Source: Diadema antillarum (taxonomy: Eukaryota). Taken from it: 64,000 bases of DNA. The notes under the pieces were generated by a model. It had not been told where the DNA came from, searched no databases, and was given only the letters and a program-made list of their open reading frames with translations. Both the position numbers and the translations under genes were made by a program. This document shows, piece after piece, positions 48,251 to 59,867 of this stretch (positions are counted from its first letter, which is position 1; every line of letters starts with the position of its first letter). The stretch covers positions 620,001 to 684,000 of the forward strand of contig NW_027271688.1 in assembly GCF_040938485.1 (NCBI RefSeq), given 5' to 3'.

Positions 48251-49341
48251 ATGTCGTTTATGCAAGATGAGAATGCTGCCATGACGTCTGATGACATTAC
48301 CCCAATCCCAGCCGCGTGGATTTTAGCGTTCATCTCGGGGGTATCTCTGTTCTGCAACGCGCTGAATCTCCTCATCATTCCAACACTCAAAGAGCTCGCC
48401 GACGCTACCAAAGTTTTCTACGCGTCACTGGCGATCATTGACCTCGTCTTTACACTCCTCATCATCGTGATGGTTAAGCCCTCCCTCACGGGCGAGTGGG
48501 AATACGGAAGACTGATGTGCAAGGTTAGTGGATTTCTGATAGGAATAACTTCCGGCTCATCTGCGACTGTGGTGGCCCTTTTGAACGTAGATCGCTTTGC
48601 ATTCATTATCAAGCCCCTCCATTACTCGAGGATTGTCACCACGCGGCGGTGCGTAATTGCTGTAGCTGTTATGATTCTGTTGCTAGTCTTTGTCGGCGTT
48701 GTGGAACACGTCTTCGCCGGCGACTTGTTCGACATCGTACGATTTCGAGAATTCGGAATATGTTTGACGGACAACCGGCATCGACGATTTTTGCCCTTCA
48801 CCATCTTCAATTTCGTGATCGGATATTGGTCTCCGGCTTTGGTGATCCTCTGCCTGTACGTCGTCATCCTCCGGACGGTGTGGCGACATTCGAAGGTCAT
48901 TGCTACCCAAGAGAGAATCGTTGACCAGTTGATGGCAAATGTAGTCGAATGTCTGTTGTTCACTCCGCAGGAGCGTTATCTCCTTTCGAGAAACGTAGCG
49001 AAAAAGTTCGGCTACTGCGATCCGAACATCGTCGACATCTTAAGTCGGTCGCGATTGCCATATCAATCACAGGATCGTTCATCCTCTCTTGGTTGCCGAT
49101 CACGATATCCGAGACAATACAGCCGATTACTGGTCGCCCGGTAGCCCGAGGTTACCAAATCGCTTTCCTGTATCTCGCATGCTGTAGCACCTGGCTAGAT
49201 TCTCTCGTCTATTTTGTCCTCAACAAAGAATACAGGAGTAATCTGAAGGAAATCTTACGAAGAGCTAAGACGATGTTCTTATTTCTCTGTTTTGTAAAAT
49301 GGAGTCATAGATTTAAAGTGAGTAACGATGAAGACACTTGA
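48251..49341 (+). pseudogene. Intronless class A (rhodopsin-like, aminergic-like orphan) GPCR disrupted by a 1-nt frameshift in ICL3; pseudogene, null allele or assembly error
   Basis: ORF 48251-49144 encodes TM1-5 (LAxxD, TM3 Cys, LLNVDRF, KPLHY). ORF 48949-49341 in the -1 frame encodes TM6-7 (FILSWLP, WLDSLVY, helix 8). The second frame opens after TGA 48922-48924. One inserted nt would give 363 aa. Confidence 0.8.
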
Positions 49342-50239: not shown

Positions 50240-51233
50240 TTAAGTGCAAATGCGTTAATCAATATTGTGTTTTGATTTAGACAAGATGTTGTTCACCGAT
50301 GTATGATCGGTACATGGTCGTGATCATTCATTCTTTCAGCAGCTAAGCTTAATTGTAGGCTCTAATGGTTTGATTGTATTATGTGCCATGTTTTAATAAC
50401 TGCTTTAAACACTGCTATTTTCAACTATATTGTTTCTGCCATATTCTTACTCCTTCATACTGTGTTTGCAAACTGTGTTTTTTTTTCTATGTTTCATGAA
50501 ATGCGATTTTATATTTATGAACTCGAATCGTACAGGACCTTGATGTGAAACATCGTCTACTTGTTGATCTTGTTATCATGTCAAAATATGTTGAGAAAAA
50601 ATATGTCGAAATAAATAATTTTTCTCAAACTGAAACATTTATGCAACTTAATAACTTTGTCGTCACTTGGTCGAACGGAAAACAGACTGCTGATAAATTA
50701 AGTTCTGACACCGATTACAGAAAAACGTAATCATTGTTACATATATAACTTGCCGAGTGCGAAATATGGCTCTCGACAAACACTGAACCATGCACACGGC
50801 TGCACATTGGATCACATGCTACCGTTTGATGTGATGTTAATTGGACAGATTAACCCCCCTCCCTGCCCCTCCATCCTCTATGGCGAACATTCAAAACGTT
50901 TCACATATCTACCTCCATTTGGTTAAGTTTGATCGAACGCCCTGGGTCTAATAATTAGCCTGACATGTTACGTGACGTCTAGAAGCTTGTCGCCAGATTT
51001 TGGCAACGATTCTTACAGATGATGCAGATTCGCAATAAAATGAGATGTGAAAGGGATAGCCTAAAAAAAAAATAAGCAAGAAACAGAATTAACTGCACTG
51101 AGTTCCTATACTAGTAAATTGTATCTTCAGGTAGCATTTCCTGTCATCCGCATTCGAAACATCTGATATCTCAGTCTCCATACTCGTTACTTATTTCATC
51201 TTCCTCATTGAGAGTGACTAGTCTGTAAATCAG

Positions 51234-51317
51234 TATATGAAGAGCTTGCTTCCAAAAGGCTCTAAATCCATTGAAAATGGTGGATTTAGCGCCTTTTGGA
51301 AGCAAGCTCTTCATGTA
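51234..51317. repeat. Near-perfect 84-nt inverted repeat (hairpin)
   Basis: ATGAAGAGCTTGCTTCCAAAAGGC-T-CTAAATCCA / TGGATTTAG-C-GCCTTTTGGAAGCAAGCTCTTCAT, 10-nt loop, TA at both ends. Confidence 0.9.
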
Positions 51318-52920
51318 TGATTATACACATGCACTATTCTACACCCATACGAGACCTATTTCCATGACTGAGTCACGATGACTAATCCCGGTCTAAAGGA
51401 GAATTATCCCAAGAAGAACGTTGGTATAAATCAGAGCAGGAGGATAAGAACAGCAAATCAGTAAAACCATTCACGGAATCGCATCTGAACGTAACCTTTC
51501 ACCTTATATAAAGAGTGAAGCTCCAAATTTATCCTGAAAATATATGAAATTTTGCATCTGAATATCCAATCGAACTCTCTGATCAATCAGCTCTAAAATG
51601 TCCTCGTAAAACCAAAGTAAACGCCATTTTCATAGTCGGCTCTTCCACAATCGGGCCCGATATTTACTGATGGCCTTACGCAAACATGACGGTATACCAC
51701 TTGTCCCACAGCTCGCACTAATTCAACTTTGATTGGGAGCGAGTGGATTTGTGTTGCTCTTGATGGGTGGAAGCTAGCTTGACACGCTGTTTGATTTCAA
51801 CATCCTCTCTGCAGAGTGATCAGAATGGAAACTTGATTGCGTGTACTCTAAACGTGATCTCTCACGTTTCTCTGTCGGGAATGGGAGGGGGCAGAACAAA
51901 ACACAGAAATATGGCATGAACTATGGTTTTCTTTCTTTTTTCATATGTTTCATATCTATGGTACAAAACAGGAAAAATAGTAAAGACAACGAGATACATC
52001 AATATTATAGTACCTTTGAATACTTCCATTTGAGAACATAAGGGTATAGTGCTTAATCTATTCTCTTGGGCTTTAATCTACTACTGACCAGCGATTCCTC
52101 CTCGCTCTATGGCTGCGTCCTCCCCTCCCCGTCTTATTCTGTCATCCTAAAGATATCATCGTGCATGAGCTGGCCATTAATCGTGACCACAGTGCTTCCG
52201 TAAGTCATTATTATGCACAATGTATCTACGGAACCACCATCTACAGTTTATTTTCCTCTGAATTATTATAACAATGTATGATTATTCTCGCCGTGCCGTC
52301 CAATAATTGTGCAAGCCAAACCTGACATCGCACCGCAGGAATCGTTAGTTGGTCACGAAAGAAAATAAATATTAGCACACTTCAAAGGGACATCACCACA
52401 TGTCAAAAATCCCATCCAAGTCTTGTGGTATTCTTGGGGTCCTCGATGCAATTCAAAACGTTTGCACAACCGTTGATCATTTTGGTCTTTCTTGAGCTTC
52501 AAGAAGATGCATTCATCGAAATGTAGTCTCTCTGTGGCTTTAAATTGCTCTTGTCTATTCATAATGATTACTTTCCCCATATATGTGTAATCATATTCTG
52601 TTATTTTTGTGTGTGCTTGTTTTGTTTTCCATGCTCCGTTGATGACTGCCGATACGTCGTGCCCTGGCGCAAAATATTTCCCTTTGTAAACAGTGGAGAT
52701 TCCATTTTATTCTATAGACACCGTGTAAGTGCTCCGTTTCCGTATACAGCAATATGCATGCACCAACGAAACACACTCGCAAAATTCCAAGGTGCCAAGT
52801 GAGAATTTAGAGAAACACTGATGCAGAATCTTTTGCTCACTGGAATGTGAAGTTTTCTGATGATTTATTTGACACAACATCTTATCACTTACAGCAACGA
52901 TGGAGTGTACAAGTGTACTT

Positions 52921-53010
52921 CACAAATAGAGAGCGTTGCAATTTCAAGACCAATTTTGACACTTGCGTGGTTTAAAAACTGGTCCATCATTATTTTCTCC
53001 ATGTCCTGTG
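52921..53010 (-). promoter_or_regulatory. SECIS element, type II, in the 3'UTR of the selenoprotein U gene
   Basis: Minus strand: A-UGA-U (52990-52986), 11-bp helix GGACCAGUUUU/AAAAUUGGUCU (2 GU), apical AAA (52973-52971), ministem CAC-GCAA-GUG, U-GA-A (52946-52943), lower helix AUGGAGA/UCUCUAU. AATAAA at 52869-52864. Confidence 0.88.
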
Positions 53011-54126
53011 AAATAAACTTGCACAAAATTCATCATTGTGAGCGACGACTGAGAACGTCTCAATTGGTGATAGATATACAGTCACGAATCGCAATATTAA
53101 CCAATAAACAGATACTAGTAATGTCATAAATAGAATACAATCGATTATGCACGATAATACATTTTACATGTACAAATAGGTATCATAGCTATTGTCAAGA
53201 CTGTAAGTTTATATCAAACGTCAAATGCCGCGGGTCTATAATTGCACTTTACCACGTATACAATAAGATTAACAACCATTCGTCTGACACATGTTACAGG
53301 CTAAATGGCCACCGCTTGAACCCTGTTCACACTGTACAACTTACCTGTTTATGTATTGATCGTTAGCAACATTGTTCATGTGTTTGTTGCTTTGTTGGTT
53401 AATGTATACGGACAATGTGTATCACCAAGGTAAACGTCAGCTTGACGTAGTGGCAACTGTTGAACAAAGTGCGCGTATAGATACTCACATGACTTATAAT
53501 TAATGTAAGCCTTATCTTAACGAACATCATTAGACACATAAAACACTGTTGAAAAGAGGAGACGCGACGTGATATGCATAGGTGAGTTCTGGTTTAGATG
53601 TAAAATAGATTACTCAATCTTTGTACTGCCACTCTGACGTGTAATACTGGTTGTAATTTCATGTATAATACTTGCATGTACATAAAAGACTTTTCCCGAG
53701 GACATGTACTACGCCGTATAACACGAGTCAAAATGCCAGAGCTAAAGTAGAATTATTTGTTACTTGAATACCAAGAATATAATACATAAATCCATGAAAT
53801 CAATTTCTACGTGTTCACTGGTTTTCTTTTTATCATTATTTCATACAAGTTACTACAGAATGATTTTATAGGCGGTGAGACCTTAATGTAGTTGAGGTAT
53901 GATCCGTTTACGGAACACGTTTCGAATCGTCGGTTTATTGAAGCTCTGTTGCGAAGAATCGTTAAGACACTTACCAAGGAAAGGGCTTGCTTTTTTTATT
54001 CCATTCATACTCAAACATTTAAAATGCATTCAAAATAACAAAAAATTGAGCAATGAATGTTTACAATTTAAGATGGAATAGGAATGTCAAATGTCGTTTT
54101 GAGTTGTGACATACTTACTTTCCTTA

Positions 54127-56518
54127 AGCGGGGTTCCCACTATCACGATTGGCGCCACGATTGAAATCGTGGCGCCAATCGTGAAGGAATCGTGGTGATC
54201 TTATCAAATCTTATCAGATCTTGACGTCAGTCGTGGCAATCGCATTAATCGTAGAAAAAATTTGGACGGTTCAAAAATTTTCTACGATTAACACGATTAA
54301 TTGTTGATCGTGATCATCGCATCAGGTTGTCTTGGATCGTATCAAAACGCAGCAAATCTCATCTAATCGTGCTTCTTAATCGTGTTGATCGGGATCGACT
54401 TTTTCACTTCCCTCCTACTTATATGTATATGTTTATTCTTCTTTTGTTTTATATTTGCCCTTATTTTGCTCCAAGATCGTACATATTTTGTATTCCGCGA
54501 GTATTAGATATTTTTATACATATCATTATTATTACTATACATAGTTTTACCATAACACAGACGCACAAAAAAGGGAGTTCCCCGTAATCAATTTGGGGTA
54601 ATTTTTTAACAAACAAAAAAATAGCAAAACTAATACGACTGTGGTATGTCTGCACCTATTGACTAAGGTCAGTATAAAAATGAGAATGATTTCCTGAATC
54701 GTGCATGAGTGAGCACACATCAAAGGCAAATTTGATTACTTTTTAGAACTACTTTTACTTTTTACTTTTTTTGTTGGGTTGTTTGTTTGTTTGTTTGTTT
54801 GTTTGTTTGTTGTTGTTGTTTTTTATTTTGGTGGGGGGGGGGTAAAGTATTGTTTCTTGTGTATTGCATATAATTATCAATCGCTGTTGTTGTTTCATCA
54901 TCCATCATTTGACCCCTTCACATCTATTGTGACACTTTTCATGTTTTGTTTTTTGTGGTTTCGGTTTTTTAGAGGAAAATAGCTGTGTCTACTCTCATTA
55001 AACTGCAAAATCCATTTAGTTTAAGATTGTTGTCAGATAATGCAGCTAAGATCTAGCAACCCATGTCAAGTGAGCATAAGAAAGAGTAGTTGTGTCTTCA
55101 TTGAGTAAGCATGTACACTTTAAAGATGGAGCATAAACTGCAAAACTGTACGGTTGATATTGAATAGAAGAGGGCTGGCACAATGAATCCTAAAACAACA
55201 CCACTGAAACATTCACCGGAAGCAGAATGTTTCTCACACCCCACGAAAACTTTTGTGACTTTTGAAAAGTGACCATTGTCACTCATACATGACTATAAAG
55301 ATCACTGTCATTTTTCACATAGAGGTTAGTTAATAAGTGTAGCAACACCCCAGCGAAATAATTTTGCTTCAAACTTATTTTGTGTTAAAAAGTGACTTTA
55401 TTTTAGGTGAGTTACTTCTCTGTTGTGTGTATATCGGTTTTGTTAAATACTGTTAAATAAAACTATTTATCAAGCCAAACCCACCAAACTTTCAATACCC
55501 CATGAGATAACGACATTTTGAAATACAAAGGCATATATACATACTATGCGAATATGAAATCAAACACATAAGCAATACTATAAGTTCGGTCAACTTTCTT
55601 ATACTGAGCCAGCATTCAAAAAGATCCAATCCTCTTTTTTAGCTTCCATTTCATCATATTTTCTTCATGTGTTTCAAAGGAAGGCGAACACCTTTTGTCT
55701 TTATCTTCTTCTTCTTTTTTTTTTTTTTTTTGGGGGGGGGGGGGGAGGGGGGGGGGGGGAGAGGGGGCAATGATTTGATCTTGCGTATGCAGTTTTTATT
55801 TTATTTTTTTTTGGGGGGGGGGGGGGGAGGGGGTGATGAGGACGAGCATGTCGATTCAATAATCTTTAGGTTGAATTAGAAGAGGGATTTTCTGACGTTG
55901 TGGCTGGCCTAGGCGCTGCTTTCTCTCTGATGATAACGTAATCGTCATTCGCAATATTGCAAAGGTCACGTTGTCATCATCCTCAATCAGTCAACCCTTG
56001 CCATCATCAATGGTTGTGGATAAATAGGCCTAATCACTCTTCAGAAGTTATAGAAATAATGAAAGACATTGTCAGTCGGACTATAATATTCCCATTCGGG
56101 TCCAATCGCGCCTTAAATCGAGTCGCTTTTGATCCCGATCGTGAAAGATATCGTATCTTATCTCAACAGCCCGCATTGCTTCGCGGTATTCGTACTAAAA
56201 CGTATCAGAACATAGCTGCACGCACCAGATCGGGGATCCCGATCGTAATGATCGTGTTAGATCGAAACCAATCGTAGACTCAATCGGAACAATCCTATTG
56301 GGTCATATTTGAATCGGAGACCACATCGTGATAGATCGTATTGCTTAAAATAGCCCAATCGTGACCATATCGCATCCCAGCGGACCAACACGTATTGACT
56401 CGCATAACCTCGTATCCAAACGTGAAATTTCAGACAAGTTCAACAAATTTTCCACGATCAGTTACGAATGTCCAATCGTGGCGTTCGCAAAGGATCGCAC
56501 GATAGTGGGAACCCCGCT
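54127..56518. mobile_element. 2.4-kb non-autonomous PIF/Harbinger-type element
   Basis: tta|AGCGGGGTTCCCACTATC ... GATAGTGGGAACCCCGCT|tta: perfect 18-bp TIRs and identical 3-bp TTA TSD. Subterminal ATCGT/ACGAT arrays at about 54145-54400 and 55960-56500. No transposase ORF seen. Confidence 0.85.
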
Positions 56519-56707: not shown

Positions 56708-59700
56708 TTAATTCTCTGCTTCTGCGATTGGCCTGATCTTATTGGCTGCCTCGATGACGTTTTTGGTATCCACCGTATCTTCGAAGGTTTTGTTCGGATA
56801 CTCGTAGATGAGACCAGTGTCGCCGGGTCCGACGACGAAAATGCCCCCTAGAGTCCAGCCGTCACCTGTAGATGGTATAGGAATGGTTACAAAAGAACGT
56901 ATCTGCTGAAAGTTCATGTCATGTATTGCATCTTCACTGTCAATGTCATAATAACGAGTAGCGAATGCTCTGATCCTCTTCCATTGTTGACCCATCTCAT
57001 ATTCTATACTTTTCATTGTATCAGGGCTAATTCTGCAATTATCGACGGGCTGAAGGCCGCCGCACACTATACGACTTTTGGTCGCACGATTGACAGACCT
57101 TGAATCCGAAATAAATCATAGAATAGCCTCAGAATAAACACGTTTGTTTATTTCAGATCCAAAGTCGCTTTAAGTCGTGCGAAGGATAGCCGTATAGTGT
57201 GCTGTGGCCCTATAAACAAAGCTATCCGGAGTTTAACCATTATTGTACATTTGTATTACAAGAATCTGAAATCCCTATGCCCTGAAGACATTTCTGTGCA
57301 ACGGCAACGCGGTACGTGCCCAAGCAGTATATCGATTGACGTACACATTTTATAGTACACTGATTATCATGGAGGTAAAATTTCTTGCCGAAGTATACAA
57401 GCTACAAACGTAACTGTATCATACAGGTATACTGAAAGGTTAGCCTCAGAATTAAGTGCGTCATTATATCTGTTCTCTTGCATCAAGATGTCTTGCATGG
57501 CCGATTATCAACTGCGATGCTTGATTTAATCAAAACGGTGTCCTACGGGCAGTCGCCTTGTACCCCTTTAACATGTTTCAATGCTCTATAAGAATTCCAT
57601 CGCTACTTTGAATCAAAGGACACTTCAACCGAGAGCGAAACTAGGACTCCTGATTATTATTATCCTCAGACTCAAGTCCATTGCTAATATAATGTCTCCC
57701 CTTCGTCAATACACAATGAATTGATTTGCTAAAACAATCGAGCACAGTAAGACTCTGCGTCAACGCAAACTGTCAAATTATCACACAATGTCTCTCGTCG
57801 AGTGATGGAAGCGCATGATATTGCTTTCCCACATCGATGCAAGTCATGAAGCAGATTAATTCAACTATCATAATCATTAATTGGGTTGACGTCTTACCTT
57901 TTAAGTTGAGGGGGATTCCTTGCTTTCTGTACTTCCACCCCATAGAGAAGACACCTTTGTGGAATATGTCGAAGAACCCCCTCTTTCGAAACTTCGGCCC
58001 ATAGAACTTCATCTGTCGCGGAGGGAACGTTGGAACAAAGTGTATCATTTCTTTTGGTAAAAATCTCTGGGACGTGCTTATGTACAATGGTGCTCTAAGG
58101 AAATCAAATACTAGTACGATGTGTACGTGTACCACAATATTCATACACTGTCACTTGACTAGTAATGTAGTGTTGATCTTTACAGCATCTCGTAGAATAA
58201 ACCATGTAATGTGTACTGTTATGAGTTTTACCTCGATTTCGTTTCTGATGTCGAATTAAGTAAGAATACACGGAAACTGTTTCGCGTAAAATGATATTTC
58301 TACACACACACACACACATGCACAAGCTCATATCTTTGACAATGATGTGACTGTCAATCCACTGTTGTTGTCCACTTTGTCTTGTCACTGATGCATCATG
58401 AACATATAAACGTCTATACCCTTGAAACTCTTTGATGTCTTCTAGAGACCCTTTGATTTCGCTTGCAATCCCATGGGATTACGTATACACCTACAAAATC
58501 ATGATAAGTTTTAATGAGCAATGTGTACCTCTGTATCAAGAAAGACTTCTCCGTCGAAGAAAGGTAGGAAGTCCTGGTAACCCAGAGATTCCCGGAGGAC
58601 AGCGTACAGCTTTATGCCTCGCGCGTCCAGCTCGGGCTTGAGAGAGGAAACCGTACGGGCTTCCTACCAGAAATCACAGGAATATAAGCATAATTATGAT
58701 GGAATCATGCGTTGTTCACAGATTCGAACCGTGAAGGACCAATGTTTACAACCTAATTTCTTTCTTGATGCTTCCTATTTTAGTATGTCATACAAACACA
58801 GCTGCTAATTAACATTTTCCTTGTCATAACTTTTTCGTTACTATTCTCCATACATCACATCAGAATAACGATCATAAATTCTTCAAGTCATTTATATCCA
58901 AATCTTATACATGTACGTTTATCCACTGTTATANNNNNNNNNNNNNNNNNNNNNNNNNNNNNNNNNNNNNNNNNNNNNNNNNNNNNNNNNNNNNNNNNNN
59001 NNNNNNNNNNNNNNNNNNNNNNNNNNNNNNNNNNNNNNNNNNNNNNNNNNNNNNNNNNNNNNNNNNAAAGCTGCTCGTAAAGTTACGAACGACTTACGAG
59101 TGACTGGTGATCAGTTCTTGTGCTGAATATGGAAATTCTGATAAGTAGCACATCAGAACTGATCATCAGTCACTCGTTAGTCGTTCGTAACTTTACAAGC
59201 AGCTTTATGAAACACCCCCTGCTACTTCTACTTCTACTATCACCACTAGTATTACAACTGTTTCTATTCTACTAATAATAATAACAATCATAATTCAGTG
59301 CAATCCTCTTGCTTAAGGGAATATACTGAGAACTCTAAAACTGATCTCACGTTCAAAGGCCTCTGCCGAAATCATTGTATTCGAAGTCTAATATATGAAT
59401 TGGTGTGCTCTCACTGGTGTGTTGTCACTGTAACTTTACTACCTATACTTTTCTTTTTCTTTCAACTTCTCATTGCGTTTCTCTCTCCCTCTTTACTTCC
59501 CCTTCATAGGTAGTATAATCACCATCTCCTTCTTCATATTTTCTTGCTCCTTTCTTAAAATATCTTCTTGTTTGACATTATCATTAATAGCAGTCGTTGA
59601 CGTTCTCGCGATTATATGCTACGCACTCACCCCTTTGCACAAGGATCATCCAGGCCGCCTCACCGCCAGGACGACTGCACCGCTTTCCCGCCACAGATCC

Positions 59701-59867
59701 TTGGCCTTGAAGAGCTGCCTACCCTTCCCCGTGCCGCCATCCCCGCCGTCTGACTCGAGAAAGTTGAGATGAGTGAGGTTGGTGTTGCCTAGCAACTGGA
59801 GGGTGGCATCTGCTAGGTACGGTTCGTTGGCGCGATCCGGTACGGCAGAGGACGCAGATGCCGCCAT
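56708..59867 (-). CDS. SELENOU: Selenoprotein U / peroxiredoxin-like 2A (PRXL2A/FAM213A family, thioredoxin-like fold), 214 aa with Sec74
   Basis: Exons 59867-59631 (GCCATGG; ...FKAKDLWRESGAVVLAVRRPG-TGA-SLCKG|GTGAGT), 58663-58529 (EARTVSSLKPELDARGIKLYAVLRE...EVFLDTE), 58012-57898 (MKFYGP...LNLK), 56865-56708 (GDGWTLGGIFVVGPG...VIEAANKIRP...*). Collinear with vertebrate PRXL2A as I recall it (AVRRPGCFLCREEA...GGVFVVG). In-frame TGA at 59648-59646 plus the SECIS. Confidence 0.93.
58934..59066. other. Assembly gap (N run)
   Basis: 133 N, inside SelU intron 1. Confidence 1.
59067..59219. mobile_element. PIF/Harbinger-type MITE, inverted copy of 17823-17991 (left end in the gap)
   Basis: aaagctgctcgtaaagttacgaac...gttcgtaactttacaagcagctttatgaaacacccc; core is the reverse complement of the 17.8-kb copy. 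Confidence 0.8.

Follow-up and report, generated by a model that had tools for sequence, protein, structure and literature searches.

The minus strand of a 64,000-nucleotide stretch of the genome of the sea urchin Diadema antillarum (contig NW_027271688.1, positions 620,001 to 684,000; hereafter the window) contains a four-exon gene with an in-frame TGA at its redox motif. The locus is very probably a gene of the selenoprotein U1 (SelU1)/PRXL2A type, in which the UGA at 59648-59646 is decoded as selenocysteine (Sec) by means of a form-2 selenocysteine insertion sequence (SECIS) element at 53015-52916 in the 3′ untranslated region (3′UTR). The TGA-containing frame and the three exons downstream of it are real. 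The insertion of Sec at the UGA would follow from the conservation of the codon, from the SECIS element and from the presence of a selenocysteine tRNA (tRNA-Sec) gene in the genome.

Structure of the gene

The coding sequence extends from 59867 to 56708 on the minus strand and comprises 645 nt, corresponding to 214 codons and a TAA stop codon. The locus contains the following features, given in coordinates of the window.

59631-59867, minus strand: coding part of exon 1 (237 nt, 79 codons, phase 0), MAASASS...AVRRPG-U-SLCKG; start as in the model P0010 of the National Center for Biotechnology Information (NCBI)
59658-59663, minus strand: cryptic in-frame GTGAGG donor in the Val-Arg codons, used by the NCBI model of the other haplotype to skip 33 nt that include the TGA
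59646-59648, minus strand: in-frame TGA, proposed Sec codon, with which the U-S-L-C redox motif (59648-59637) begins
59625-59630, minus strand: GTGAGT donor of intron 1, proposed true donor; SLCKG is joined directly to EARTV in the transcript-like contig L009
58529-58663, minus strand: exon 2 (45 codons), EARTVSSLKPELDARGIKLYAVLRES...FLDTE; match to the Pfam domain AhpC-TSA_2 and 76% identity to residues 90-134 of P0012
57898-58012, minus strand: exon 3 (38 codons and 1 nt), MKFYGPKFRKRGFF...PLNLK(G); placed by its frame and by alignment to P0010 and L009
56708-56865, minus strand: coding part of exon 4, (G)DGWTLGGIFVVGPGD...IAEAEN-stop, with TAA at 56710-56708; placed by Pfam, P0010 and L009
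54127-56518, no strand assigned: DNA transposon of 2,392 bp in the presumed 3′UTR, window haplotype only; 18-bp perfect terminal inverted repeats (TIRs; AGCGGGGTTCCCACTATC), TTA target-site duplication, no long open reading frame (ORF)
52916-53015, minus strand: form-2 SECIS element with a long helix I, AUGA core (52990-52987), 11-bp helix II, AAA bulge (52973-52971) and UGAA (52946-52943)
52864-52869, minus strand: AATAAA, located about 50 nt downstream of the SECIS element; judged by sequence, it is the likely poly(A) signal for the mRNA with this element

The start codon (59867-59865) lies in a good Kozak context (gccATGG). A previous reading of the sequence alone, hereafter the sequence-only reading, had proposed that the frame hides a TGA, beyond which S-L-C-K-G leads up to a GTGAGT donor. 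This is what the minus strand contains: the TGA at 59648-59646 is succeeded in the same frame by TCC TTG TGC AAA GGG (S-L-C-K-G), which ends at 59631, and then by the donor. The same reading held that three further exons complete the fold. The exons at 58663-58529, 58012-57898 and 56865-56708 are flanked by AG/GT boundaries and complete the frame, L009 joins them, and they are under purifying selection, in agreement with that proposal. L009 is a transcript-like contig from a related species; it aligns to the window over the four exons only, with identical boundaries and no interruption across the exons. A run of N at 58934-59066 falls within intron 1. Similarity searches used single exons or the natural ORFs of contigs.

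Family and active-site motif

Exon 2 alone matches the Pfam family AhpC-TSA_2 (PF13911) with 25.3 bits and an E value of 2e-5, where the cut-off of 27 applies to a whole protein. The match of exon 4 is weak (E 0.15). The domain is also present in P0010, which is 98% identical to the protein of the window gene, and in a 139-residue ORF of L009. The closest named matches are PRXL2A proteins, namely that of Strongylocentrotus purpuratus (48% identity) and a FAM213A-like protein of Limulus (50% identity), and a separate PRXL2B-like gene is located on contig C7.

The sequence-only reading had placed the TGA at the first Cys of the PRXL2A CxxC motif, and the alignments agree. In BLASTP comparison with the S. 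purpuratus peroxiredoxin-like 2A protein (P0012, UniProt A0A7M7NEU3), the exon-1 piece aligns up to G83 and exon 2 aligns from E90. Therefore, residues C84-S-L-C87-R-E of P0012 stand opposite U-S-L-C-K-G, and the TGA aligns with Cys84, with which the CxxC motif begins (RRPG-C-SLC). The motif also aligns with CVVC (RRFG-CVVC) in the solved structure of PRXL2B (PDB 9us9). A search of 1.84 billion representatives with the exon-1 piece returned no full-length Cys homologues, since the conserved stretch is too short to find them; it returned truncated calls of the Sec type and unrelated repeat proteins (P0003, P0005-P0007). The protein calls found with this piece, which stops before the TGA, likewise end in ...AVRRPG, and their contigs continue with TGA and then SLC.

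SelU1/PRXL2A proteins (FAM213A, C10orf58) of fish, birds, platypus and marine invertebrates share the AhpC-TSA_2 thioredoxin-like domain with the window gene. They carry the motif RRPG-U/C-xx-C at the equivalent position, and Sec is inserted in them through UGA and a 3′UTR SECIS element (PMC3316567, PMC3473315). S. purpuratus PRXL2A and its Diadema orthologue on contigs C868 and C1321 belong to the same family and have the same exon-1 end, the motif AVRRPG-x-SLC and a four-part layout. Both have a hydrophobic N-terminal segment (MALLWGAAAAAVGG...), whereas the window gene, which is 48% identical to the S. purpuratus protein, is a paralogue without one. The window-gene type has so far been found in Diadema and two related samples (L009, L010). 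PRXL2B (SelU3, prostamide/prostaglandin F synthase) has a homologous fold and an aligned CxxC motif, but it represents a subfamily more distant from the window gene, for which its prostaglandin synthase activity is not implied.

Conservation of the TGA codon

The D. antillarum genome was assembled from HiFi reads with hifiasm as an uncollapsed assembly (bioRxiv 10.64898/2026.05.24.727502), in which both haplotypes are retained: 84.4% of the BUSCOs are duplicated, and the haploid size is about 703 Mb (PMC13511894). The genome searched here (G000) comprises 1.7547 Gb in 2,963 contigs, and each locus examined was found in it twice. The window, which belongs to contig C800, is collinear with contig C684 over at least 11 kb, and these contigs were taken as the two haplotypes. 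The C684 copy may instead be a recent segmental duplicate, in which case the argument for Sec would stand unchanged.

The TGA is invariant in seven of seven sequences: both haplotypes, the paralogue on C868/C1321 and four contigs of other samples (L009, L010, L015, L016). In the codon table of these sequences, the adjacent Leu, Ala, Val, Arg, Pro, Ser, Cys and Lys codons vary synonymously. Two of the contigs, L009 and L016, lack introns and are transcript-like, and in them the AhpC-TSA_2 ORF carries on in frame directly after the TGA. L010 and L015 are genomic contigs, in which SLCKG or SLCRE is succeeded by a GT donor, and the paralogue (L017/L018) also has TGA-SLC followed by a GT donor. The C684 haplotype keeps the TGA and differs in the next codon by a synonymous change (TCC to TCT); of the thirteen coding differences between the haplotypes, nine are synonymous.

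An exon-by-exon comparison of the window gene with L009 gave proportions of nonsynonymous and synonymous differences (pN and pS) of 0.14 and 0.71 and a dN/dS of about 0.07, with dS saturated. In exon 2, downstream of the TGA, pN is 0.02. The coding sequence of the window is undamaged and contains no further stop codons or frameshifts. These codon comparisons indicate that purifying selection acts across and beyond the TGA. An in-frame UGA thus stands where homologues have Cys, and the coding sequence beyond it is conserved, a combination that, judged from sequence, characterizes selenoprotein genes.

SECIS element and selenocysteine tRNA

The absence of a SECIS element had been named in the sequence-only reading as a finding that would speak against a selenoprotein. 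An element was found downstream on the same strand, at 53015-52916. It is the single candidate from a scan for sequence pattern and pairing in the 4.2 kb downstream of the stop codon. Its internal loop has AUGA facing UGAA, and its apex is formed by a CAC/GUG mini-stem with a GCAA loop. The predicted fold has a minimum free energy of -28.8 kcal/mol (z -3.1), and none of 200 shuffled sequences was equally stable. Across both strands of the 64-kb window, it is the only element with at least nine contiguous helix-II pairs, where 0.1 would be expected from shuffled sequences. The element is identical between the haplotypes at 106 of 106 positions, in surroundings that are 98.3% identical. As a positive control, the Sec-containing paralogue was scanned in the same way, and a comparable element was detected 0.9 kb downstream of its stop codon.

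No competing ORF of note is present on the gene strand between the stop codon and the SECIS element, and the element is therefore without another obvious owner. Judging from this arrangement, the SECIS element would be part of the same mature mRNA as the UGA. The genome encodes a tRNA-Sec with the anticodon TCA (79.4 bits, cut-off 47) in two copies, one per haplotype. Taken together, these elements are consistent with Sec insertion at the UGA.

Several observations weigh against this interpretation. A search of 14 kb with the Rfam model SECIS_1, at E values up to 10, gave no match, and on a 231-nt stretch the model (RF00031) aligned only partially, with a score of 15 bits that does not reach the gathering score of 35. 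The SECIS candidate of L009, at about position 1549, is weak, with seven pairs and a fold z of +0.5. The window haplotype has 3.7 kb between the stop codon and the SECIS element. Five sense-strand AATAAA hexamers inside the transposon and two more AATAAA outside it precede the element, so that some or all transcripts of the window haplotype might terminate before the SECIS element. Finally, the NCBI pipeline, which is able to use RNA-seq data, selected an isoform that skips the TGA.

The Rfam result was put into context by a search of the whole 1.75-Gb genome, in which SECIS_1 gave nothing at the gathering score of 35. The best score was 32.5 bits, even though the genome contains tRNA-Sec and several selenoprotein genes, and the SECIS element of the paralogue scored 22.9 bits. 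Therefore, the model is unreliable in this echinoid and unusable as a test. The contig L009 may stop short of its true SECIS element, and no homology was found between the 3′UTR of L009 and the window.

Insertions between the stop codon and the SECIS element

The distance from the stop codon to the AUGA core is 3,718 nt in the window and 1,881 nt in C684. When the insertions private to each haplotype are subtracted, the ancestral spacing is equal in both, about 1.32 kb. The insertion in the window is the transposon at 54127-56518, which is absent from C684, where the empty site contains a single TTA. At least 29 near-full-length copies of it, with 88-98% identity, are present in the genome, and the transposon appears to be young and recently active. 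Its TIRs and the 3-bp TTA duplication suggest a non-autonomous element, which we take to be of the PIF/Harbinger type.

The insertion in C684 is a 561-bp repeat in the 3′UTR (C684:256757-257317; L013:7758-8318), located opposite positions 53973-53975 of the window. It has imperfect terminal inverted repeats of about 16 bp (AAAGGTAGGG...) and at least 40 copies with 97-99% identity, and is a very young element that looks like a miniature inverted-repeat transposable element.

A possible but rather improbable explanation is that the gene is a genuine selenoprotein gene of which the window haplotype is impaired, because the transposon causes premature polyadenylation or uncouples the UGA from the SECIS element. 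The impaired allele would yield a 73-residue truncated product or an mRNA degraded by nonsense-mediated decay (NMD), while the other haplotype would be functional, which is compatible with a selenoprotein gene at this locus. The insertion is limited to the window copy, with a clean empty site in C684; it is young, as indicated by its 98% identity to other copies, and contains the five sense-strand AATAAA hexamers. However, AATAAA alone predicts little, and two such hexamers also precede the SECIS element outside the insertion. The other haplotype has its private 561-bp repeat in the same UTR, which therefore tolerates insertions, and the coding sequence of the window is undamaged. SECIS elements work at distances of several kilobases from the UGA, as in DIO2, and the UGA-SECIS distance in the window haplotype is still within this working range.

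Annotation of the gene

Standard annotation was expected in the sequence-only reading to mis-splice or truncate the gene, and the NCBI model bears this out. The peroxiredoxin-like 2A protein of D. antillarum (P0010), annotated on C684, has 203 residues and is 96-100% identical to the exon pieces of the window. It reads ...GAVVLA/EARTV... and omits exactly V-R-R-P-G-U-S-L-C-K-G (11 codons, 33 nt). Relatives have GTA CGA, GTC AGG, GTT AGG or GTC CGC at the codons of the cryptic donor, and GTGAGG occurs in none of them. Since the Val-Arg codons differ in the relatives, the cryptic donor is not conserved.

It is very unlikely that the NCBI isoform is the true main product, in which case splicing at GTGAGG (59663) would give a 203-residue protein without the redox motif, and the TGA would never be translated. 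The NCBI pipeline did annotate P0010 in this way, the GTGAGG sequence is plausible as a donor, and the skip keeps the frame. However, no part of the family is more conserved than the skipped 33 nt, which are kept in the transcript-like contigs L009 and L016, and the GTGAGG donor is absent from every relative compared. The TGA, its flanking codons and the SECIS element have been kept by selection, and gene predictors routinely avoid in-frame stop codons by splicing of this kind. Least probable of all is that the TGA is a plain nonsense codon, the gene being a pseudogene or a null Cys-type PRXL2A allele, or that it arose as an assembly error: TGA is a stop codon by default unless SECIS function is proven, but the same TGA is present in two independently assembled HiFi haplotypes, the paralogue and four contigs of other samples, other stops and frameshifts are absent, dN/dS downstream of it is about 0.07, and both a SECIS element and tRNA-Sec are present.

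Other SelU-family genes and neighbouring features

The second SelU1/PRXL2A-type gene of the genome is located at C868:818799-822962 on the plus strand and C1321:78046-81437 on the minus strand (loci L017-L022 and L026). It is the orthologue of S. purpuratus PRXL2A, with 83% identity in exon 1, and has the hydrophobic N-terminal segment. Its exon 1 ends in AVRRPG-TGA-SLCRE, followed by a GT donor, and a SECIS-like element is present about 0.9 kb past its stop codon (L026 1191-1259; Rfam 22.9 bits). In the database entry of P0012 the motif contains Cys, whereas TGA occupies this position in contig L015 and in the Diadema orthologue. The Cys in A0A7M7NEU3 reflects either a real Sec-to-Cys difference among urchins or a database artefact.

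A PRXL2B/SelU3-like exon at C7:1482105-1482293 (plus strand, locus L025) contains an in-frame TGA in its motif (FLRRFG-TGA-PSC-RLGASELSSLKPQLD). Judged from its sequence, it probably belongs to a third Sec-containing gene of the SelU family.

Two further features are located outside the gene in the window. A near-perfect hairpin of about 95 nt at 51228-51322 has a self-match in inverse orientation in C684. Matches to several microRNA families, unrelated to one another, were obtained on both strands, and all of them fall far short of threshold (best mir-507, 47.8 bits where 79 are needed). The hairpin is probably a small inverted-repeat element rather than a microRNA gene. Two overlapping ORFs of 297 and 130 residues at 48251-49341 on the plus strand resemble, when combined, a seven-transmembrane receptor whose reading frame is interrupted by a frameshift or an intron.

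Proposed mechanism and significance

Based on the gene structure and the SECIS element, the following mechanism can be proposed. The gene would encode a 214-residue protein with a thioredoxin fold, of the selenoprotein U1/peroxiredoxin-like 2A type, without an N-terminal membrane anchor and with the motif U-S-L-C. During translation, tRNA-Sec would read the UGA at 59648-59646 as selenocysteine, directed by the SECIS hairpin at 53015-52916. Sec would take the place of the first, nucleophilic Cys in the CxxC motif of Cys-type homologues, and the product would presumably have a redox function. In the window haplotype, the young TIR transposon has shifted the SECIS element to 3.7 kb from the stop codon, which puts it about 4.1 kb away from the UGA once the mRNA is spliced.

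A sea-urchin SelU with Sec has reportedly been described already, by Castellano et al. in 2004. SelU was first identified as a fish selenoprotein and later found in birds, platypus and unicellular eukaryotes, whereas mammals have Cys forms only (PMC3316567, PMC2397514). In six marine invertebrates, more than ten SelU proteins with Sec have been described, and they represent all three subfamilies (PMC3473315). The statement of the sequence-only reading that this position is Cys in mammals and Sec in fish and other lineages thus agrees with the literature (PMC3316567, PMC3473315, PMC2397514). Because Sec-containing SelU is widespread in invertebrates, its occurrence in a sea urchin is expected, and the locus leaves the knowledge of SelU and of Sec decoding unchanged. 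Three aspects are of some interest: the gene is demonstrably mis-annotated, an in-frame TGA occurs in three or more SelU-family genes of this genome (the window gene, C868/C1321 and C7), and a haplotype-specific transposon separates the UGA from the SECIS element.

With this transposon, the locus provides a natural experiment, if a modest one, on the distance of the SECIS element and the choice of the 3′ end. We speculate, as a scenario with little likelihood, that the sequenced individual is heterozygous in function, with the 2.39-kb insertion ending transcripts early and uncoupling the UGA from the SECIS element in one allele, while the other allele carries the different, 561-bp insertion. 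If so, the selenoprotein would come from one allele, the other giving a 73-residue stub or a target of NMD, and the locus would offer a snapshot of the loss of a selenoprotein gene or of a push toward Sec-to-Cys conversion.

D. antillarum is a species of conservation concern with a newly released genome, and selenoproteins are unmentioned in both genome papers. The main value of the finding is a correction of the annotation. By splicing past the proposed Sec codon, the pipeline removed the active site from the RefSeq-style model of D. antillarum PRXL2A. At least two further SelU-family genes with an in-frame TGA in this genome are likely to have been mishandled in the same way.

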